A stretch of 63,007 nucleotides of DNA, filler included, from Perkinsus chesapeaki ATCC PRA-425 (taxonomy: Eukaryota > Protista > Perkinsozoa), in the NCBI GenBank assembly GCA_013115145.1. It is 5 parts of 5 records of this genome, joined end to end, with 100 filler letters (N's around TTAATTAATTAA, not from the genome) between each part and the next. Parts side by side here need not be neighbours in the genome. Positions count along the whole stretch, not along the records: positions 1 to 30,020 come from JAAPAO010000447.1; 4 more parts are not named here. One strand, written 5' to 3'. Every line of letters starts with the position of its first letter. Positions within the stretch are counted from its first letter, which is position 1. Positions 9,012 through 30,373 of this stretch are shown here, piece by piece. The notes under the pieces are model-generated. The model did no database searches and was not told the origin of the DNA. It saw only the letters and a list, made by a program, of their open reading frames with translations. The translations under genes were made by a program, and so were the position numbers.

Positions 9012-12000
9012 ATGTCAAAGCAGCATTTTGCCAAACCTCATCGAACGCGGCCGCCGTCTTCTACATTCCTTGGTTTGAATAACTGGTATAAGATATCATT
9101 ATTTTGGTTATATATAGTCGTGTGGGTTGCTCAAGGCCTATTGGTAAGTCTACCTTGTTAGCTTCAATACTTACCACAATTTGCCACTTCAACGATTATT
9201 TGCGCGTAGAATGGATAGTCTAACTAAGCCAATTTCGGCGTTGGACTATAAACTCACATACACGTACCACAATTCGCCATTTCAACGATTTTTCCTTTCG
9301 CGCTTCAAGATAGCCTAGGTTGAGGATCAATAACCAGACTTCACCAACTGCTTACGTGTCTTAAAGGCACGTGTACCCTAAGCTGCTGCCCGTGCTTAAG
9401 CTTCGAATATGTGTATCAGAAGTACGGTCGGGAAAAGATCAAGTCTAAACTTGCATTTTTGACAAGGTTAGCTGTGAACGTTGAATTCCGGTCTCGGGTA
9501 GGCGTGCGCTGTAATGAACTCTGAAAGATGTTTGTCAATTGAAAAGGTTAAAGAGATGTATTCCTGTTGAGGTCCACGAAGTATCGGTGGCTGACACCAG
9601 AGATGGCATCAAGACCGATCCCAAAGTAGCAGTAGCATGGCAAGAGACTACCAAACTCATTATGGCTTGGTCGCTATTTCTATTCGAAACCGGCGGTACG
9701 ATAATGCAGCTTATAAGGCAATCGATGGGGCATCCAAGGTTACTGATGCTGTAAGTGATGTGAGTTAAGTTAGTGTGGACAGCTAGAGGTGTCAGAAACC
9801 TGGTGCCAGCGACGATGTACAGTATTTATAACGTCCTTACCTACTATGGATTGAAGCGTTTCGATCCAGCTACCTATTTTGTAAGTGATTGAACTTTTAC
9901 GAATCGATTGCAGTCCCATTTAATAATACCTAATATAAAACCACATTCTGTTCCGGTTCGCTGATGACATGCGTGGTAGTGAAAACATATAAAGTGTGGA
10001 AGGTATCCAACGTTCTGAGCATCGGTACCGTACTTCGTCGACAAAGGCGCGACTTTGTCTCTGAAACGGTTTCACTTTCCCTTTATCATACGTATCTGAC
10101 TTATTCGTGTTTGCCTAGTAAGATTTAGCCCCCCATGTCGAATAAGTATATTACTTATGTGTTTTAGTGAGTTGATACGTTTTTATAGGTAGTTGAAGTT
10201 ATAATATTGACACCACATCATGGCAAACATTTCTCTTTCTTTTACCTACAATTTATAATGTATTGTAGTGAATCATCATTTCTGATATTTTATTCCATCC
10301 AACAAGTATGAATATTCTCTATAGTAGGAATACTGTATCGGTTACGATCCGCATCCTAATAATTCACATAGCAGCTCTCAAGATAGACCAATTGCTAGAC
10401 ATAAAACGGTCGATGTCTTCTGTAATTCAGGTGTTATTGCAGACAAGAATAATCATAACAGCTGTATTATATCAACTCCTTGACACGGCTAATAGAAGAA
10501 TAACTCGTACCCAGTGGGTCGCACTTTTATTGATAATGTTGGGATCGATGCTCAAGGAAGGTCCAGCGTTCTATGCTGTTATCTCTGGTAAGGGGTTCTT
10601 CTCCTATATATTCTTGAGTAGTTTTATGTTTCAGGTGGTACCTTAATGATGCATCCACCAAGTGACTATGCGATCATCCTCTTACAAGCCTTCTTGTCGA
10701 GCTCGGCAGGTATCTTCTCGGAGAAGCTCCTCAAGCAGCCTGAAGTTAATCCACATGTGAGTGCGTATCGAGATAAATGTTAATGAAGCGAGTCAGCAAT
10801 CGTTTAGGATACCTATCATCGTGGGTTTTGTCACCCGTTCGGCGTTGGACTATAAACTCACACACACAGTCACCCATCGGTTTTACCTCTTACATTTACC
10901 CGATCGACGTCGCCTCCATATCTGTTTGGTATGTTTTATTACGTGCGCCTAGAAAGAATATATTCGATGCCATTCGCTGTAGGATAATAAACCCTATGAG
11001 AATTTCTAGAATGTCTCCACTTCAGGAAAAAGATAACGCTACCTGCATGGCGTGTCGATCTGTTTCATGCTGGTTAAATGACGCCTATCTCCCATATGCT
11101 AGTTAAACCACTTTGCATAGCGCCACTCGTAAAAAATACCTCCCCGCGTAATCACATTATGCGGCAACGGGCAAAGCGTGATTGAAAGTGAAAGGCGCGC
11201 ATTGCATGCACTGTGCGGTTATTGCACTAGCATGGGACAACGTCAACTACGTCCACATTTTCCCTATGCGTAGGGCTTACCGTCTTCGAAGTCTCGCGTT
11301 CTTAGTCGCTGTATTGACACAATTACAACGCTTTTCCGTTTTAAAGTAACGCGTGCTAACACGCATGCGCAGGGGGGCGGCGCCCCGTTCATTGCCCTCA
11401 GGGTGTGAAATATGCTCCCCTGGCAACTCCTGTATTGCTGAATTGAACCAAATGTTACTCGATAGTAGTACCATTACACTATGGCGATCCATAGGACTGT
11501 GGTTGGTCGTCAGTAGTTGTTGTTTTTGTACACGATGCAGCAATCCGTCGACCGCATGTTCAATCGAGCGTTTCCACGCAAACGACAACTACCATCCTCA
11601 AGCTCCTCTTCTACAACTCCCCCACCTCCCAAGCCTGAGAGTGTGTCCTCAAAAGATACCTCTGAAGAAAAAGCATCCGTTTGCAAACCTCGCCAAGGCT
11701 GGTTTGACCGGTTTGAGTGGCTTGTCAACCTCAGAAGCACGATGGGACAGGACAGATTGGAATCTATGATGAGATGCCACATTCACCGTGACACTCTGCA
11801 TCAGTTGGACCTCAAGAAAGTGGTGAACACTTTTGTTAGGACCAACACTACGAGGATGGCACACTTCAAACTTTTCGAGGTCTCCTAGTTAGTTCTCTCG
11901 GCTCGATTGTGCCTTGCCGCAAGGCCATCGCATAAACATAGATATAGTGAAGGAAGGGTGATCTGACCTGCTGGGAGCTACTCTAAGTAACTGCTCAATT

Positions 12001-13255
12001 ATCATCTGTTTATCTGACCGTTTTTTTGCTTTGCTATAGAACGGTACTTCTAGTATCCCTCAAGTAGCTCAAATCTTTTCTTAAAGGGAATCGCGTCGCT
12101 GAGTTTGCAGTTCAAACTAAGAAGAAAAAATCCTGAACTCCAGGGCGAGTGGCTCTCCATGACTCTGAGCGAGTCGCCCCCCTCAGTTTCTGCCTGGTTG
12201 GGCGCCTCTTTCACTCTGATCTGAGGGACTCCCTCAGATCAGAGTGAAAGAGCATAGTATTAATATGAGTATAATAATTAATTATTATAGCTAATTAATT
12301 GCTATTGATACAATTTTAATTAGTGGAATACATTTTGCCTTCTAAATACATATATTCCCGGATCTACAGCTTGTCGTTTCAGATACAAAATTCCTTTATG
12401 TACCTGGATAGTCTACTACTACTCCTCGTCACCTCGTATAGTAGTAATCAGATAACCTACTGGGACCAACTCACTCAACCATTAACGCGTCCTTGGACCC
12501 TGGCTGCTATTATCAACGCTGCAGTAACTGGTAGGCTTTCTTGCGCGCCCTGAAATTATAGAGTTGCTGGAACAAGCGTGAACGTGTGAGAACGTGTGAA
12601 AGTACGGAGTCAGGGCTTGTCGTCTGAAGCGGTTAATGTATCCTGGCATGGCCCCATTGGGAATTTCAAAAACGAAAATTGTTTGGTAACTAGCAAAGGA
12701 TGATTGATAAAATGTGAAGTATGAATTCTTCGGGTTCACTGGCTGCAATCACAGACTGCAAGTCTGTGAGTGCAGTCAAAGACTTGTCAGTCTTTTCACT
12801 TGCAGTCAAAGACTTAACTGCAAGTTTGGAGGGTCCAATCACCACAACGCGCGCGGCCATCAGTTTAATACTGTACCTCCCGCTTGCATGGTCCTCTCAG
12901 GTATAGTAACTGGTTTTGTTCTTCGTTCCCTTGGCTCGATTATCAAGTCTATCGCCGCTGCTGTAGAACTTTGGGGCACGGCCCTGGCGAGCTGCGTAAG
13001 CATCCCAGTAATTGAGAATTATTGTAACTGTTTCAACATTAGATACTCTTCGGGTATTCGCTCTCATATTCGGCCATTGTTGGGATACTCTTCGTTTCAG
13101 TTGGAGTGTGGTTGTATGGCACTAACGAAAGTGAGATTGGAAATTGGAATGTGCCCAACAAATTTCACTCTCCCGAAAATAATTAATATTAATATTCTAT
13201 TTCTTTGTTAACGGTGCGATTCTCAGGCTCGCCAGTGACGGTTAAGATCGACTGA
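9012..13255 (+). CDS. Nucleotide-sugar transporter, SLC35A/UDP-galactose transporter-like (multi-exon)
   Basis: Exons: MSKQH..LYIVVWVAQGLL; QETTKLIMAW; LVPATMYSIYNVLTYYGLKRFDPATYF; VLLQTRIIITAVLYQ..TQWVALLLIMLGS; LSSSAGIFSEKLLK; IQNSFMY; GIVTGFVLRSLGSIIKSIAAAVEL; ILFGY..VGVWLY. All match the SLC35A hydrophobic pattern, with GT-AG boundaries in frame. Confidence 0.88.
9198..9264 (+). mobile_element. Ultra-short retro-insertion (LINE-3'-end/SINE-like), copy 1
   Basis: 67-nt insert ending GGCGTTGGACTATAAACTCACATACAC, flanked by a 26-bp direct repeat (9172-9197 and 9265-9290, 2 mismatches), in intron 1 of the transporter. Confidence 0.85.
10837..10868 (+). mobile_element. Ultra-short retro-insertion, copy 2
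   Basis: TTCGGCGTTGGACTATAAACTCACACACACA flanked by GTCACCC (10830-10836 and 10869-10875); intronic. Confidence 0.8.
11535..11888 (+). mobile_element. Internally deleted hAT transposase remnant inside a transporter intron
   Basis: The ORF joins an N-terminal WFDRFEWL (start of a TTF-type zinc finger) directly to LRSTMGQDRLESMMRCHIHRD..LDLKKVVNTF (hAT C-terminal dimerisation domain). TIRs/TSD not resolved. Confidence 0.72.
12206..12252. repeat. Perfect 47-bp palindrome (23-bp arms, 1-nt loop)
   Basis: CTCTTTCACTCTGATCTGAGGGA-C-TCCCTCAGATCAGAGTGAAAGAG; the arms are exact reverse complements. Confidence 0.97.
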
Positions 13256-13365: not shown

Positions 13366-14074
13366 ATGTCTGGTATGGACCCTAGTGCAGTACCGGGCTT
13401 TAATGCTCTTTCAAATGCTGATCAAAGAACTGTTGAAGCTGAAATGCAGCGGCTTCAGGTGCCGAACGACTAGCGTCTGGAATGCGCTCGATAGTCTACC
13501 TGCCTTTTATAACATTTGAATTCCCGTTAATCCATTTCGCCTAACGAGACAGGACTTCCGATTTATTCCAACACCACCTTTAGCCGCCATTATGGCCTAT
13601 GGGAACTAGGGGCTTGGAGACCTAGTGTCCAAGAACTACCAGTGCTCGAATATTTATCTCCGATGTGTTGATGAGGGCAAGTGATTGGCCGACTGGATTA
13701 AGGACAGCATACTGATCGAATAAATCCAAGTTGTTCTTTAACACATTTCCATTTTCTTTCAGATGCGTGATTCGATGAATACCTACAACAACATGGTCAA
13801 TAGATGCTTCAGTACGTGCGTTAGAAGCTTCAACGAGAAGAAAGTCAATGGCGAAGAAGTGAGCGGAGCGAAGCGTTTCATGTTTACCATTTTTGTCATG
13901 GCTCAGATCGATTGCACCAAGCGATGTGTGCAAAAGTTCGTGATGTATTCGCAGCGTGTGGCGTTGAGGTTTGCTGAACACAATGCCGAGCAGTCGAAAA
14001 TTCTACAGGAAAATGAATCTCGAGGGAACACCTTGGAGATATACAAGGAGAATGAGAAGAAGGGTGTTGAGTAA
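13366..14074 (+). CDS. TIM9: Mitochondrial intermembrane-space chaperone TIM9 (3 exons: 13366-13458, 13763-13858, 13907-14074)
   Basis: MRDSMNTYNNMVNRCFSTCV..DCTKRCVQKFVMYSQRVALRFAEH: twin CX3C motif and the Tim9-type YN / RF-E signature. Confidence 0.92.
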
Positions 14075-14159: not shown

Positions 14160-17100
14160 ATGTCTGATGGTGGTCGGATACGTTCATTGAGCCCTCGGAA
14201 AGGCGGCCGTGTCAGGGAGCTTTCGCCGTCTCCGATTGATAGAGATGATCTCGATGTTGATGAATTGGCTGATAGAATAGTTTTAATGAGAAGTCCATGG
14301 CAAATGCCAAGCGATAGGATGGTAGGCTCTTTCATACCGTATTCTCCTCAACGATATCGACATTAATGTGTAGCACTGTCATCCCAATTATTATTGTGTA
14401 TAGTCCCTTTTTTTCATACACACGTTTTCACTAAAAGATTTGCAACCTGACTTATACACCAACAACAGGTATCGTATCAAGAAAAATAAAGATAAACTGT
14501 CGTCGTGGAATTGCAGATGTTGCTAATGAGACCTTCGTCTGACAACTGCACGGTCCTCCGTTGTAGGATATACACTTCTCCCGTCATTGAGTTTGGGCGG
14601 TCTTGGTACGCCTGAGACTATCAATCGCAAGCTGTGTTTGACCGTCTTTCTTCATCGCTGTTTTCACGTGACGTGAATGAAGCACAGAGGAGGACTCCTT
14701 TGTCATCGTTTGTGGTGGTTTGCAATGCACCACAGGGGGCATTTTGGACGTTGTGAAGGTTCAAAAGTGTTGTCATTGATTAGGCACATCGCAATAACAT
14801 CAACGTTGTATCGGAGTACCTTACTGATCGATATGGATGCAACTTCGCCGTGTGGAATATTGAAAGATCTCAGAGATCTTTGGTGGAGCCGGAGAAGTTC
14901 AGGAATCAGGTGAGAAAGGGCGTGGGTTCGATTCTTTACTGCGGTGAGATCGATGAAGCTCCTTAGAAAAGCGGTCTAATCGTCAAGCGCTCAAGATCAA
15001 TTGGCGCAACTTATGGTGCACGTAAATCGATATGGAAGTGATTTGTTAATAGTAATTTAACCTCGTACAGTGAGACTGGGATGAGGGCTGCTCGGCAGAT
15101 TCGAGGGGTTACACGCGAACATAGACACACTCGCGAGCCGGAAGTTGCCGATTGTTAAAGTGGACATGTGAATCTGTCGCAGGTCCTGGCATTTATTCAA
15201 TCGTTTGAGATATTCGACTCATGTCTGAATGTTCTTATTTTTCTTCGAACTTCTACAGTATCATTTGATGCCATATAGATAGTAAAGGCTGGTAGATACG
15301 CCGACATTGCTTGGTTTTCTTCAGATTCTTAATTTTACCCTACCGGCTACAGAAGCAAAAGGCCAAAGCTTATTATTGGCTCCACCAAGTCTAGGTAGGA
15401 TTGGTCACGTCTAATGTTGTGGAGCATTCCTATTTCAGAGTTACTTAGTCGTTTTTGTTCGTCCTTGCTCTTCTGGCTTGAACTAGACCGCACGAGGTTC
15501 GTGGCTGTTATTCACTGCAGAGATACGTCAGTAAGCCTATTGCGTCGAGAATTCGCCTCACTTACCCGAATTCATGGTGAAACCGTTTGTCTATCCGGTT
15601 TGCTATTTCTCGAGTGGAACATTTGACACCAGTTTCTAGGGTCTCTGGAATGTATACAAGTTGCTTCCGCGGTGTTCTATAATAGGATGCTTGGATGTTC
15701 CACCGCGAACCCTTGGGATAAATATCTTACTTTTGAATTCTTTGCCGAATTTTTTAGGAAAAATTGGGGGGAAATGAATTTTTCCATTTTTTATTTTTCG
15801 TCTCAGCCGACCACTTTACTGTTCATAATAGCGGCGTTGGTGTCGACTGGTGTATGTGCCGAAGTTAGAGATGCTATCGGCTACCTCAGAGAGAGATACG
15901 CTCTTACCGAACAGGTGGGGTGCGGCCTGGGGGTGAACCGTGAAGTATCCACGCATGAATAACTAAGCCAATTTTCGGCGTTGGACTATAAACTCACACA
16001 CATGAATAAGCCACTTTTGAAGAATATGAAATGCGGAGTTGTTCAGCCTGTTCTTTAGTACCTACTTTTTGTATTCTCCTACTCACTTTTTTCTGGTCTT
16101 GCATTGTTGTCATAATAACAGCCTAAAAGAATGCCGGTATCGTGTCAGTATTAATAATGTCATTTATTATCAAAATTGCTACTATGATTGAGCTATTAGT
16201 TACCATCAAAGGAAATAATATCATTCTCGGCAAAAAGATATGTTTGCTAATTTGGCCCGATTTTCACCGGGATATGAAAACCTCCGAATCGGGAAATTAT
16301 ATTACGCAAATGCTCAGTAAACCGGCGCTGAAGAAAAAAGCAGTAGAAAATAATTTTAATCGTTGTAAAATAATCTTGCGCGAAACGGCCCGGGAGTTCG
16401 GAAAAATAACTAGAAGGCGCTTTGGTTTCAATGAGCATCTCGGGCTTATGCTGCCGGTATGTCACATGCGCTGTGTAACTGTCCCCTGTCAGAGTAACAA
16501 TGTTACTGTACGATCCACCAGCGTTGAGCGAGACGCCTCCTTGGAGGGTTCTCGATCTACAGTGAAGTTCACGGAGCCTACTTCATGGCCACACAGTCTT
16601 CAACGGTGAGGTGTGGTAGATGTAGCTTCTGCTGTTAGAGAACTCCACCAGGAAAGAATTTTCCTGCGGGAAGGCGAGAAAATTTCGGTGGAATTTTTCA
16701 TCGCCTGGTCTAGCGTGGAGTGATGGATAAGAATTTGAGGCTTCACTGAGGAGGCTGAAGAGACCTTGATTTGCTATCACAACATCATTGCGGCGATGAG
16801 TTGTTTTGGTAGGTACGCCAAATACCTTCAGAAGCTCATTACGGCTGATGCTGGTGCAGCGAGGCAGACACCAACGTAAGCGATCTCCACGACATTTACG
16901 AAGAATTTTTTTCTAACGGGAAATTGCGGAAAAATCCAGCTTCAGAAGTGGACAAAGATTGTCGATTAAAAGGATCGCGCTGAGGAATTGATGGACCTTT
17001 GGTGATGATACTTTAGAGGCTGACTGAGACCGCTAATCTCGTACCGGCGACCAATTCCATTACAAAATCCAAACGGGAACTGCACTGAATAGTTCGTTGA

Positions 17101-20100
17101 TTCTCTAGAGCTTGAGATGTTTGATAACTCCCCACCGAGCGCCTACTGTTTAGATACCTGCTTAAGATGGTCATTATTGATCACTTTATTCCTCCAGCTT
17201 CGGATATTTACGTTGAAGTCGGGGAAGTTGTATTGGATAGATCGGAGCAGTTCAAGTCTGAGATTGGCGTCCTGGCCACCGATAACACCTATGCGATTGT
17301 GTGAGGAACAGTGGTTCGGGCGCTGCCGTGAAATAACTAGTCGGCGAGGAAAACTTTGATCTTGAAGCGAAAACGTGAAGTGGAGCCACCCTAGCTTAGC
17401 CAGCTTAGCTGAAGAACCTTTAAATTCTTCAGTCATGGTTAAGTCATGCTTCCCGATAACTAATATTACCCTTTATATTACCCTTTATATTACCCTTTAT
17501 ATTACCCTTTATATTACCCGTATATTGTATTTGACGGTATGGAAGGCAGAAGTATATGAAACCGATCCGGGGAAGGATAAAATTCAGGAGTATAACTGGT
17601 AAAGGCTGCTAAACGCACTTTTGCCTCCTGTTTCAGAGACTCCGACGAAATGACAGGGTCAATGACTGTAGATATGACCCACGGTGGAGAGTATACTGTG
17701 GTGCTTCGTGGAGATGTCGGTATCGTTATCAAAAGTAGAACAAGATCAAGGTTGAGTGCAAGATACTTCTTCCATACCGGTAAGGTGCAAATGGCAAATA
17801 CGACGCCGTGCTGCCAGAGAAATTGTGACTTTTCCAACAGCCTTCAGTTGACTATTATTTTGTTAAGGGTTTCTTGACAAACTGTACGAAGATTAGATTC
17901 ATGAAGAGAGTGTGGCTCTGAACATATGAAAGGTGCTGCAAAAGAGTGAACCCTTCATGGGCTGATTTCCTCGGCACGGGAACACAGATCTGAGATTGAA
18001 TTCCACAAACTGCACGAACCTGAGAGAGTCGCATCGCGTCTCTTCGCTCAAGCCTCTTGTGCGAAGGACCCAATCTAATATACATTCCTAATGCAAACTT
18101 CACGTGCATTTATTAGCCATGCCAGCTGCGCCGATTTTCCACCTTTATTGTCTCTCACTGCTGACAATGGACTTGGTCGGCATACTTGTTATTCATGGGG
18201 AACACGCACCTAGGACGCCCGCTGACTAGCTCCTCAACCTTAGTTGCTCCTGATGAGAGAAAAAGAGCTCGAATTCCACAGAAAAAGAAATATGCTTTTA
18301 ATAGCATCTAGAAGAAATCGCACGAGTCTTCGAGTTGTTCTTCGCAGCGTTCGTCGGTAACGATGAGGGTGAGATATTAGAGCTGGGCGTTGATGATATG
18401 GATGTCACTGGATTTGATGCTGGCCAAATACCTAAGGACTTCAAACTTACATTGTCCCTCAACAGGTAGGTACCCAGCTATATGGTCGTCATTATAAACT
18501 GATAAGTACGTGTTATGAATTGTACTTCTATCATATGATATGTATACATTAGCTAAATTTATATATTATTAATTATAAGCCCATCCACAAAACTGTATCA
18601 CATCAACGCTAGTTCATTCGATATAACGAGCTTAATGATCATTCTTTTTGTCAGTTGATCCTAGAGGTGTACGAATCACGATAGTCATCACTGTGATGAC
18701 GTTTTTGCCCGGCCAGTCATATTTTGTGAAACTGCCAAAAATCGCGCCTCCTATTTACTATCAGTCTACCATACTATCTATATACTATTGATTTACTAAC
18801 AAACAATAGAAATTGTTCTTAGACCCTTGAAAAACACGAGTTGATAAGAATTTGACGCGCGGTGTATATTGTATTTATTCATTTATAATGAATGATGAGC
18901 CATCGGAAAGTATGCAGTTCGTAAGATTCACACTGGCCAGATATGGAACGTTCCGAATTCGATGTCTGTCGTGATTAGTCTTTTTAAAATCAGCGGAATA
19001 GCCTTTGGGATTCTCGGGAAAAAGTAAAGGGGAACGAGCCAGACATTAGTTAATCTCAAGAACGAGACTATTAACCTCAAAAAAGTAACTCTTGAAGATA
19101 TCTTCTACTTGTGTTGCCCAGGTGGAGCGTTGAGGACCAAGAACGTTTCGAGGACAGAAAAAGGAAAAGGGCCGAGGACGAGGCTTTGGCTCGAGGGGAG
19201 CATTTGCAGCGGATCCGTAAGGCATCCTTTTGGCGATTCCCATGGCACCTGTAAGGATCTCTGAGCGGCTCTGCTGTTGCTGAGGATGATGTGTCACCAT
19301 CGCAACGACGTAAAGTGGGTAAGCTTAGCGATATGTCACCGTCTGCGCGAAAGGGAAGTGATTGGTCGACGGTGACGCTTACGAGGGAGACGGCAATATT
19401 GGAAAAACCCAAGGGGAAGGGGTAAGACTTCATGGAGGAACTGATACAACTGTACGCTGTTCTTCCCGCTAGTATAGCAATATCAATCCATCATTTAGTT
19501 CGCATATGATCTGGCCCTCCATATGATTCATTAGTGTATTCTTGCTGTGGCGAGATTCTAGTCTTAATGCATTAATCTTTTTCCGAATAAAGCTTCTCCA
19601 GATTTCCCATCTGCTCACGTTTGGTGCCTCAGGAAAGTGTTTTTCGATCATCACATGTTGGCACCGACGGTGCTGGCTAAGACCCGTACCGCATCCCACT
19701 TTCCTCTTTCACCCTGTAATAGAGGTTGTGATCCAGTGGCTGCTCTAGAGGACCGTGGCTTCGAGAGGATTCATGCTGGCATATCTCTGGAGGTAACCAT
19801 TCGCTGCACTTTACATATCGGTGGCTCGGCTATTACTGCCTGGCCAGCTGGGTAGCCCAACTCTGGTTCAAGTCGTTGACAACTACCCGGTCGGAGGAGG
19901 TCTGCATCACTCTACACTAAGAAATAGTTTATATCGGGCGACTTTCTTCACGCGCCACGATATTCTGTGCCCTCAGGTATCGGATATGAACCTGTTCGAA
20001 GCCTATGCGTTTTGCGAACGTTATTTTCCCCTGTCGGTGGCGGCGACTGTTCGATCAGATGGTCGAGGGATTTCCCGCGCGAATAGTTTGGTAAGAAAAG

Positions 20101-23100
20101 TGTCCCGCTTGTGTGACAGGGACGGGGTCCTTAGGCGTATCCTCTACCAGGGAGCATAACAGATGACGACAGCCACCTGATGGAAGATTTCAATCGTCTG
20201 CATTTCCTCGGAGTGCTTAGTCGGGGCGTGGGAGAGGGTCGCCAATCTATTGCGAATGGCGATGACGACAACGCCTCAAGTGTAAATCGTGCCAGAAGGG
20301 CCTCATCGTCACCGGTGAGCCAGCGGTCATTTCGATCGTCGCTGGTGCCGGGGAGCAACCCCGAGTATAGTTCGTCAATTGAAGAAGGTCGATACCCAGC
20401 TACGCAGTCCGAAGATCTTACCTATTTTCGAGGCGCGCGGTCACGTCGTCAGTCGATTTCCAGTGATGTTGTTGGCAGCTATGATGAAGACGATGACGAT
20501 GAGTACCATTTGGTCGACTCCTCCTCGACGACAGGGGGTTGGTACCGGATGCGATACATGTCTCACCTAGCCAGACAAGGTGGACGGACGTTCGGTGACA
20601 CGGCTGGCGGCTGCGGGGGCAGGCCGCTCATGCATCTCCTCGGTCCGGACGTAGGGCTGCCTGTCACAGACAGCCGCTATGAAAGCACAGCAGCCACTGG
20701 TCGAGCTGTTCCGAGATCGTATCATCGCCCATCCATATCGGCGTTGCCGAAAGCCAGAATGCCAGGGGTACCTTCGTCGCGATCGAGGCAAAGAGAGCTG
20801 CAACAACGCCGAACATTGAGGCACTACCAACAGCAGCGGCTGAGGAGAAGCTACGCTAGAAGCGTTTGCACCACCAATAGTGTTATTATGGAGTCACCCC
20901 CGGCTGGGAGTGACGCTAGTGGTATGGTGATGCAAGGGAATCTTGATGAGCTCCCTGAAGATACCTCGGGGTCGGCTCAGTTGTCACCGTTGTCATGGAC
21001 CAAGTGTGATGAGGAGGTCATATCACCGATACCTCAGAGGAGTTCTGATGAGGATGGAGTTGAAGGTTTATCACCTCAGATGGGAACTGCAGTAGTCAGT
21101 AGTGTCATCTATACACAGACTGGTCAAGGACCTTCACAAGTTATGTCTACTATTGAAGGGACGCCACCGCCCTTACCAACTGGTAAAGGGACACCACCGC
21201 CCTTACCAACTGGTAAAGGGACACCACCGCCCTTGCCAACTGGTAGAGGGACACCACCGCCCTTACCAACTGGTAAAGGGACACCACCGCCCTTACCAAC
21301 TGGTAAAGGGACACCACCGCCCTTACCAACTGGTAGAGGGACACCACCGCCCTTACCAACTGGTAAAGGGACACCACCGCCCTTACCAACTGGTAGAGGT
21401 ACCGCTCCTCCTCTACCTTGTGGTAAACCTCTGTCTTCAATCGGATATCGAGTATGCGGTTTAGAGTCTCCTGAGAAGCCCCTACGCTCAAAAACTGGAA
21501 CCCTCCCTAGTGGTAAGGGTATGCCCCCCTCCCTCCCTACTGGTAAGGGTATGCCTCCATCCCTCCCTACTGGTAAGGGTATGCCTCCATCCCTCCCTAC
21601 TGGTAAGGGTATGCCTCCATCCCTTCCTAGTGGTAAGGGTATGCCCCCCTCCCTTCCTAGTGGTAAGGGTATGCCCCCCTCCCTCCCTAGTGGTAAGGGT
21701 ATGCCCCCCTCCCTCCCTAGTGGTAAGGGTATGCCTCCATCCTTCCCTACTGGTAAGGGTATGCCTCTCTCCCTCCCTAGTGGTAAGGGTATGCCTCCAT
21801 CCCTCCCTAGAGGTAAGGGTATGGCTCCTCCTCCTCCTTTGTCTGGCAAGATGACACCTCCCCGAGCAAGCCTTGGTGAAGGCCATCCTCCCAGTCTACC
21901 AAGCGGTAAAGGCATTCCACCTTGTGCTCCGGGCAAAGGAGTTCCCCCGTCCATCGGTGGGAAAGGTCTTCCAGCCCTCCCCAAAGGTGGCGTAGTTACA
22001 CCATGCATGTCACCTGATCGCCCTACTGCCGAGGGATCTCCTATAGTCCTTCGCTCGCCACCTCTGGCATCTCCTCCACCCCCACCATTAAGTAAGTGCC
22101 GCACCTCTAATACGCATTTTTATCATTCAATTTCAGATAGGACATCGCCTCAAAGCGCTCCCAGCAAAAGTAGGCCTAGTTTAATGGCAGTTCTGTTGGA
22201 AACAAAACTCTCAGAAAAGCCAGCGGGTGTCCTACCACTCGGTAAAAAGCTCCATTGGAAGGCAATTCCTGATAGGCTTATAAGTTCTACAATATGGGCA
22301 AGCTACGATGAGGAAGGAGTGAGCCACGGCCATGGCTAGTGATGGTACCAGCTTATCCTTACAGTCCTCGACGCCATCCGATGATCACAGTGGGCAAACG
22401 CTGGCACGTGATGTAGCTGAAATGAAGACTGTTTTTGGGGCGTCAGCTGCTCAGTTGGAAAATAAACATGAAAAGAAGAAAATTGTCGGTGGGGATAAAA
22501 TCAGAGTATCTTTGACTATCTTTTGAGCTTAGATGATCGACCTAAGCTCATTGAGATTCTGGACCAGAAGCGAGCGCAGAATGCAGGGTTGGTCATGGCC
22601 CGGTTACCTGTGGAACTTCTGATTGAAAAAATGGAAAATCTTGACGTCGATAACATGGTTGACGCTTCCGACGATGAAAGTGTTTCACAGTTGAGCCACC
22701 CGCGAGCGGCTGGCTCTAATGTAAGACCTCCTCTTCGATCGTCTAGTAGACGATCGAGTAGACGACGCCTACGCCCATCCTGCTATTCAGAGCGAGACCA
22801 ATACTGAAGGCTGCGCCACAGTGGAGATGCTTGAGAAGCTGTCAAGCATCTTGCCGACTACGGAGGAGGCGGAGATGCTTCGGAGCTATCACGGTGACCT
22901 TTCCCTGCTGAGACCAATTGAGCGTCGATTGATGCCATTGGCTGTGATGAAGAGGCCACAGTTCCGGATAAAAGCCATGGTCGTCTTCCTTACGTTTCCA
23001 GACCAAGTACTTTATTAATGCGCACCGCCGGGTCAAGTTTTGCTTCAGTTGAGTGGCGTCCGTCGATCGATAGGAATATTCCAGGAAGCCTCTGATCAGG

Positions 23101-28763: not shown

Positions 28764-30373
28764 ATGCCTGCTCGTGGTGCAACTGCCAGAACCGACAATT
28801 CACAGTCGGGTCTGCCAAAAGGAAAAAGCTCTACGGCGCCAAAGCGGCACCGTGCGACATTACCGGTGGACGAAGCAGTGCGGATATTAACCTATAATGT
28901 TCGCTCGATTCGTGCACATGTGGTGGAAGTTAAGAGGATGGCGACAGGATGGTTGAAGAGGAAGGTGGATGTTATTGTACTGACGGAGAGTTGGTTAAAA
29001 CCGGGGGATAGAACCCCACGCCTTGCTGGATATACTGAGGCCGCAAGGAAAGACAGGAAGCAGCCTGGTAGTAGTAACGAGGGAAGAGGCGGGGGAGTGC
29101 TTATTTATGTAAGAGATAAGGTGGGATATGCTGTTGAGGAAATTAACTACAACTGTCGTACAATTCATGAGGGGATAGACTATATAGCGATTAACATATG
29201 TAGGAGTAAGAAAAGGAGGATACAACTCGTTGGCATTTACGTGCCCCCTAATCTCAGTGATGAAATATGGGAAGAAAGTATATTGGATTGGGACCTTAAA
29301 AACAATGAGAAGGGAACAGTCATTATAGCCGGTGATATAAACTCTCATGGAAGTTGGAGTTCGCTGAGTACTTCGGCGGGAGATAGAATAGAGGATTGGT
29401 GCGCAGAAAGGGGCTTGGAAGTTCTTAACGAGCCCACGATTCCTACTCGGATAGCAGTTACTACCAACAGAGAAGGTGATCGTATTGTTCAACAATCAAG
29501 CCCTGATGTTATTATAATGAAGGCTGTGTATGCGGCCCGCTCTATATGGGAGGCTTATCCAGAAGAATCTTGTGGATCAGATCATGTTCCTATACAGATA
29601 CTCTTCCCATGGCAGCAGGAAGAAGGACCAAAAAATATCAAATATCGGAAAAAATGGAAGTTGAAGAAAGCAAACTGGGATATGTTCAGGGATGTTTTGA
29701 ACAAACGTTGTGAAACATCGTTGGGAAATATATGCCAGAATATGACAGCCCAACAAGCATATGATATGCTTGAATCTGATGTCATCACATCTTTAAACCA
29801 ATCGATACCTAAGACCACTAGAGCACGAGAGTATATTTGGTGGTGTGATGAAGTTGAAGCAGCAGTTAAAGACCGGAAAGAAGCTTTAAAGAGATTTCGG
29901 CAAACTTGCTCTGCGGAAGATGGAGAGGTTTATGAGGAGGCAAAGCAAGCTTGTAATAGATTGATTTTAGAGACAAAAAGAAAAAGCTGGGAGGATTTCT
30001 GTTCGGAGTTAAATCCAGCGNNNNNNNNNNNNNNNNNNNNNNNNNNNNNNNNNNNNNNNNNNNNTTAATTAATTAANNNNNNNNNNNNNNNNNNNNNNNN
30101 NNNNNNNNNNNNNNNNNNNNCATCTATATACACATTATTCTACTACATCAAATGGGAATATAACACTGGAGCGGAGCGACGGGTTCCACTAGTACAGTAA
30201 GTGAGTACTCCCAGTCTCCAAAGGGGCAAGACGGGAATACTTCATTCGAGCGCAAACAACTATTTATGGCGAGCTAAAAGTGAACCGCAAGCACGTCTCT
30301 GCTGTCTGTCTGTAAGTCGTCTGACTTTCGATTTAGACTGAACCATTCTTGGCGTTGGACTATAAACACACAC
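28764..30373 (+). mobile_element. Non-LTR retrotransposon (APE-type LINE, I/ingi/Jockey-like); RT hidden in the gap
   Basis: ORF 28764-30020 has APE motifs ILTYNVRSI, VLTESW, GGGVLIYV, IYVPP, GDINSH, PDVI, SDHVPI, followed by WKLKKANW and WW..SWEDFCSEL. The post-gap segment ends GGCGTTGGACTATAAACACACAC. Joining across the gap is inference. Confidence 0.85.
30021..30120. other. Assembly gap with TTAATTAATTAA linker (similar gaps at 42009-42108, 47239-47338, 53532-53631; plain gap at 33732-33824)
   Basis: N runs read directly. Confidence 0.99.

Follow-up and report, generated by a model that had tools for sequence, protein, structure and literature searches.

Three short insertions and their gene context

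The window is the whole stretch of DNA that was analysed (63,007 nucleotides, filler included), and the features described here lie in one piece of it, contig C2890 of the Perkinsus chesapeaki assembly; the assembly that was searched comprises 41.7 Mb in 3544 contigs. By the citation given in PMC8062965, the genome paper for this species is that of Bogema et al. (Genomics 113:677). Within the piece, the 20-mer CGTTGGACTATAAACTCACA matches exactly at three positions of the + strand (9239, 10843 and 15979) and nowhere else, against a chance expectation of 0.01 matches obtained from shuffles. Each match lies at the 3′ end of a short insert that is bordered by its own target-site duplication (TSD), TSDs being inferred solely from flanking repeats. 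The layout of the three copies is as follows.

9172 to 9197, + strand: upstream TSD of copy 1, 26 bp, 24 of 26 positions identical to 9265-9290
9198 to 9264, + strand: insert of copy 1, a 5′-truncated LINE 3′ end
9215 to 9249, + strand: predicted 3′ UTR hairpin of copy 1, with a 10+3 bp stem and a 6-nt loop, directly 5′ of AAACTCA(CA)n
9265 to 9290, + strand: downstream TSD of copy 1, 2 mismatches against 9172-9197
10830 to 10836, + strand: upstream TSD of copy 2, GTCACCC
10837 to 10868, + strand: insert of copy 2, 32 nt, with 100% identity to the parent over the final 25 nt before the tail end
10869 to 10875, + strand: downstream TSD of copy 2, GTCACCC, 7 bp
15954 to 15962, + strand: upstream TSD of copy 3, CATGAATAA, 9 bp
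15963 to 16000, + strand: insert of copy 3, 38 nt, 97.4% identical to the parent 3′ end
16001 to 16009, + strand: downstream TSD of copy 3, CATGAATAA

For these three copies, the coordinates, the common 3′ end and the TSD lengths of 26 (with 2 mismatches), 7 and 9 bp given in a first-pass annotation were reproduced exactly; the fourth copy listed there is located outside the piece. Its reading of the inserts as products of target-primed reverse transcription (TPRT), with a fixed 3′ end, variable 5′ truncation and variable TSD lengths, holds as well.

Copy 1 opens with about 3 nt of filler, followed by some 59-64 nt that are collinear with the parent element and by the tail CACATACACG. Positions 9201-9258 match the parent 3′ end at 94.9% identity (BLASTN), and the exact 22-mer of the LINE 3′ end lies at 9237-9258. 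In a genome-wide search with the flanks included, the flanks proved to be single-copy and only ~9198/9201-9264 to be repetitive. No empty-site allele of copy 1 was found in this assembly, as the flank search returned its own locus and other LINE copies only. Copy 1 seems to derive from an older insertion event, as suggested by its two TSD mismatches and by the 94.9% identity of its insert, compared with 100% and 97.4% for copies 2 and 3, respectively. In copy 3, the LINE shows microhomology at the truncation point to the final 3 nt of the upstream TSD. Since the 5′ arm of the hairpin is absent from both copy 2 and copy 3, these two would be truncation products and could not be independent functional units.

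All copies had originally been placed within introns, a claim that fares differently from copy to copy. In the intron scan, stop-free segments were compared with Pfam one by one, exons not being joined. Two weak collinear Nuc_sug_transp matches on the + strand (10272-10643, profile positions 107-150; 10622-10780, profile positions 180-205) have a GTGAGT donor (10757) at their end, and copy 2 starts 80 nt downstream of this donor; a location of copy 2 inside an intron is plausible from this arrangement. Support was not obtained for copies 1 and 3. Copy 3 has an open + strand segment on either side, neither with a family match, and a possible donor (15915) precedes it. The three inserts span more than one gene. 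An introner-like element was considered and rejected, as the GTGAGT donor at 10757 is host sequence and the inserts are without terminal GT..AG.

Several other features were observed in the same piece. A Tim10/DDP zinc-finger gene (13742-14071, + strand; 1.2e-10) is apparently split by a short intron. A near-perfect 47-nt palindrome with 23-bp arms and a 1-nt centre (12206-12252), followed by a very AT-rich stretch, lies in the putative long intron, or spacer, that follows the NST-like exons, and a perfect 12-nt tandem repeat, ATATTACCCTTT, extends over 4.8 copies at 17463-17526. Further downstream, a 719-aa open frame (20180-22339, + strand) with no Pfam match resides in an island of 55% GC; tandem repeats with a unit of 30 nt (10 aa) form two arrays within this frame (21156-21399 and 21501-21828), and a contig search with its protein gave no match.

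Genome-wide length range of the family

The 22-mer at the 3′ end has at least 131 genomic matches at up to 2 mismatches (73 on the + strand and 58 on the - strand), spread over more than 90 contigs, and the reversed control has none, which bears out the earlier description of a multi-copy family. In the sequence upstream of the first 30 loci, most copies reach well past 67 nt and are mutually collinear. Lengths were then determined for 58 distinct copies of the at least 131, selected by the 3′ 22-mer and measured against the longest copy up to the end of the 22-mer. The parent-collinear lengths form a smooth spread from 22 nt to more than 4256 nt, with a median of 104.5 nt and an interquartile range of 59-217 nt (n = 58). 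The shortest are 22, 25, 25, 33, 34, 36, 39, 43, 44, 49, 50, 51, 53, 57, 58, 61, 67, 73, 77 and 80 nt; beyond 80 nt the spread is even up to 722 nt, followed by single lengths of 1153, 1166, 3170 and >4256 nt. Copies of at least 1 kb are rare (4/58). Every measured copy is collinear with the 3′ end of one LINE encoding an apurinic-type endonuclease (APE) and a reverse transcriptase (RT), up to its individual break, and no preferred 5′ end is present among them.

This distribution bears directly on the central proposal of the first-pass annotation, namely a distinct ultra-short retroposon with a defined master RNA of ~67 nt. Such a dedicated non-autonomous RNA would carry the LINE 3′ recognition module only and would be mobilised by the LINE in trans. 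The stable hairpin and tail within the 3′ 45-50 nt could suffice for recognition, copy 1 measures ~64-67 nt, and very short copies are numerous, with 27/58 at 100 nt or less. However, lengths do not pile up at 67 nt among the 58 copies: only 3 copies fall at 58-67 nt, and the nearby values of 57, 58, 61, 67 and 73 nt belong to an even spread without an excess at any one position. Copies 2 and 3 and seven others of the 58 are shorter than the hairpin itself, and hence truncation products. A promoter-like head, or a tRNA or Rfam match, was not found either. The proposed class therefore dissolves into a range of copies that is continuous from 22 nt to more than 4.2 kb, with no spike and no shared non-LINE head; the histogram of 5′ ends passes smoothly into a longer LINE, the very pattern that the annotation had itself set against its proposal. 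We regard a dedicated ~67-nt RNA as very unlikely.

A conventional SINE, composed of a Pol III head that was missed and a LINE-derived tail, would have precedents, given that partner SINEs with a common 3′ tail often accompany stringent-type LINEs (PMC1636434, PMC4176376). Against this, when the 300-nt stretches 5′ of 54 truncated copies were compared all against all by BLAST, no shared non-LINE head was detected, the only matches being one artefact and one match of 62 nt, and LINE collinearity extends to the break in each measured copy. Searches for tRNAs (ARAGORN) and for Rfam families gave no match, which is consistent with the lack of Pol III boxes noted at the outset. The probability of a SINE origin is accordingly put at extremely low.

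We consider it highly probable, instead, that the three short insertions are dead-on-arrival, extremely 5′-truncated copies of one autonomous LINE family of P. chesapeaki. Family membership, the continuum of lengths and the TSDs are direct observations, as is the coding capacity of the parent element.

Two long copies represent the parent (L048, on C3401, and L032, on C2989). They align over 3182 nt at 96.5% identity and have unrelated flanks, and L032 continues in the 5′ direction to its contig end, which puts the minimum length of the element at 4.26 kb. Pfam searches identified RVT_1 at 3.2e-23 in L048:1345-2979 and at 6.7e-13 in ORF2 of L032. A 651-aa ORF of L032 (1643-3598, - strand) carries both Exo_endo_phos_2 and RVT_1, the former at 4e-7 (30.4 bits, cutoff 27.4) over residues 87-213. 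Downstream of the RT, ORF2 contains a C-terminal Cys/His domain. The upstream ORF1 (185 aa) is gag-like, carries three CCHC knuckles and, at its end, overlaps the start of ORF2. The 3′ end consists of the predicted hairpin, AAACTCA and a (CA)n tail with n = 2-6. The long copies are without common terminal direct repeats of the LTR kind, and an RNase H domain is not recognisable in the P. chesapeaki copies read. An intact full-length master was not seen among them, as the two longest copies are frame-broken and one reaches the contig end. The ORF of L048 is 100% identical to 'hypothetical protein FOL47_011004, partial [Perkinsus chesapeaki]', which is encoded on a 10,059-bp contig. The nearest relatives of the parent protein are found in P. 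olseni (35-37% identity), all others being at most 28% identical, and the neighbours of the parent RT in the protein atlas belong to generic 'jockey-like' or RVT_1 clusters. Judged by its architecture rather than by RT phylogeny, the parent can be classified as an APE-type non-LTR retrotransposon that is I/Jockey/CR1-like.

A LINE at 28764-30020 was rejected as the parent (21% identity, E = 0.024). This open frame on the + strand, which is cut by the contig end, contains Exo_endo_phos_2 (1.8e-12) and Exo_endo_phos and is the 5′ portion of ORF2 from a second LINE family, unrelated to the parent.

The 3′ module, insertion junctions and a proposed mechanism

The RNA of copy 1 (9198-9264) has a predicted folding energy of -17.5 kcal/mol (z = -3.45), and 0/200 shuffles are as stable; the same hairpin is also predicted in a long copy. 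Covariation in the hairpin is not assessable in this set of copies, which were chosen by the 3′ 22-mer and thus by the 3′ arm. The reverse complement of the loop region has what we take to be a likeness to the dinoflagellate spliced leader, and this lead was dropped as too weak.

Conservation of the 3′ end was also apparent in the P. olseni relative (L078, JABANP010000211.1:13990-25978). Its RT is 35% identical to that of the parent, and its C-terminal domain 44% identical (E = 6e-26); it also contains an RNase H piece (3e-4) that is interrupted by a stop. The box AAGCC..TTTCGGCGT..GAC..TAAA is kept at its 3′ end, followed by a long tail of (CAA)n/(CAN)n, not (CA)n. The inner GCC/GGC stem is likewise kept, and the outer stem is not evident in this single relative. 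The surrounding region is rich in transposable elements, with another element of APE+RT type from 9401 and an RNase_H-bearing ORF at 611-1900.

In stringent-type LINEs such as eel UnaL2 and zebrafish L2, the ORF2 protein recognises the 3′ stem-loop and repeat tail of its own RNA (PMC1636434, PMC4176376). The Perkinsus element shares with them a stable predicted hairpin that adjoins a short repeat tail, and a terminal box of ~45 nt has been kept between the distant Perkinsus relatives despite protein identities of 35-44%. It differs from them in that no partner SINE was found for it and that it has no sequence similarity to the UnaL2 tail. Its 3′ pattern thus resembles that of stringent-type LINEs, and a comparable recognition by its ORF2 protein may be supposed by analogy.

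Exact TSD cores could be delimited in 30 copies, where they measure 6-14 bp (mode 7-11) and abut the truncation point and the tail; the 26-bp TSD of copy 1 is the long extreme of the range. The base at position -1 of the TSD is T in 17 of the 30, and the TSD itself mostly starts with [G/C/A]C. Such starts would fit a model in which the (CA)n tail of the RNA anneals to the bottom strand after nicking. Microhomology of 1-8 nt is frequent at the 5′ junctions, and a few junctions carry 9-16 nt of filler that is partly target-derived. Microhomology and filler are known features of LINE 5′ junctions. At three loci (L070, L072 and L024), the LINE 5′ end is separated from the TSD by 9-16 nt of filler that partly copies the adjacent target, inverted in L070 and direct in L072 and L024, which suggests template switching during second-strand synthesis.

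Taken as truncated LINE copies, the insertions could have arisen by the following route, in which hairpin recognition, the use of the tail for priming and the cause of truncation are modelled on what is known of TPRT. The ORF2 protein would bind the 3′ hairpin and tail of its own RNA and nick the bottom strand of the target, with a weak preference for T just before the segment to be duplicated, which itself usually starts with [G/C/A]C. Synthesis of cDNA would be primed on the (CA)n tail and, in most cases, be aborted or resolved after tens to hundreds of nucleotides; a staggered second nick would then give rise to TSDs of mostly 6-14 bp. With the RNA 3′ end as the starting point of synthesis, such a scheme would leave copies of any length with the identical 3′ end.

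Comparison with known elements and regional clustering

The P. chesapeaki element shares overlapping ORFs, CCHC knuckles in ORF1 and an ORF2 comprising APE, RT and C-terminal Cys/His domains with the Jockey, I, CR1 and L2-like group. Further likenesses are the massive 5′ truncation, the variable TSDs, a short microsatellite tail in place of poly(A), and the RNase H domain in the P. olseni relative. In contrast, proteins outside Perkinsus are at most 28% identical to it, and RNase H was unrecognised in the P. chesapeaki copies read. As with chicken CR1 and mammalian L1, the majority of copies were dead on arrival, being short fragments whose 5′ junctions show microhomology, but truncation is more extreme in P. 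chesapeaki, with a median of ~105 nt and a quarter of the copies below 60 nt. Searches of the literature yielded no description of Perkinsus non-LTR elements, and the family is for this reason apparently undescribed: a LINE family of an already known kind that had apparently not been catalogued before.

The result is thus mainly a negative one, in that a supposed class of minimal retroposons turns out to be ordinary LINE debris. The value of the family lies in its clear 3′ module of what would be the recognition type, in its recent activity (copies 95-100% identical) and in its unusually severe 5′ truncation. Insertion polymorphisms could serve as markers for strain typing of P. chesapeaki, a parasite of oysters and clams (bivalves). 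The family is also relevant to repeat masking and gene annotation, as NCBI labels one copy a hypothetical protein.

The copies are not evenly distributed. Under uniform insertion, three copies within 6.8 kb have a Poisson probability of 1.6e-6 per interval of this size, and ~0.01 such intervals would be expected genome-wide. Among the 100 matches listed, 16 pairs lie within 10 kb of each other, against 2.4 expected. Other clusters, of mixed orientations, are present on C802 (4 copies in 9 kb) and C564 (3 in 10 kb), and clustered LINE 3′ ends occur on C802, C564, C2890, C585, C2906, C2240 and C930. With three same-strand copies in 6.8 kb and clustering elsewhere in the genome, one might think not of retrotransposition but of events at the DNA level, be it local duplication, gene conversion or chance similarity. 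Yet the three copies are individually distinct in both TSD and truncation point, 0.01 matches to the motif would be expected by chance, and copies are found on more than 90 contigs; the copy-specific TSDs refute DNA-level events, to which we assign a negligible probability.

Simple random TPRT does not explain the clustering of the copies; an insertion bias, or regional tolerance of insertions, could do so. There is a slim chance, finally, that the terminal module of ~45 nt (hairpin, AAACTCA and (CA)n) is a self-sufficient retrotransposition signal, that some very short copies come from separate short RNAs, for example processed 3′ UTR fragments, and that integration hot-spots explain the clustering. 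If true, a LINE lineage specific to Perkinsus would have in such short copies a SINE-like parasite at a nascent stage. As a separate observation, two truncated copies stand in opposite orientation at C2905:18013-21034 (L028), with a common inverted flank of 92 nt between them.
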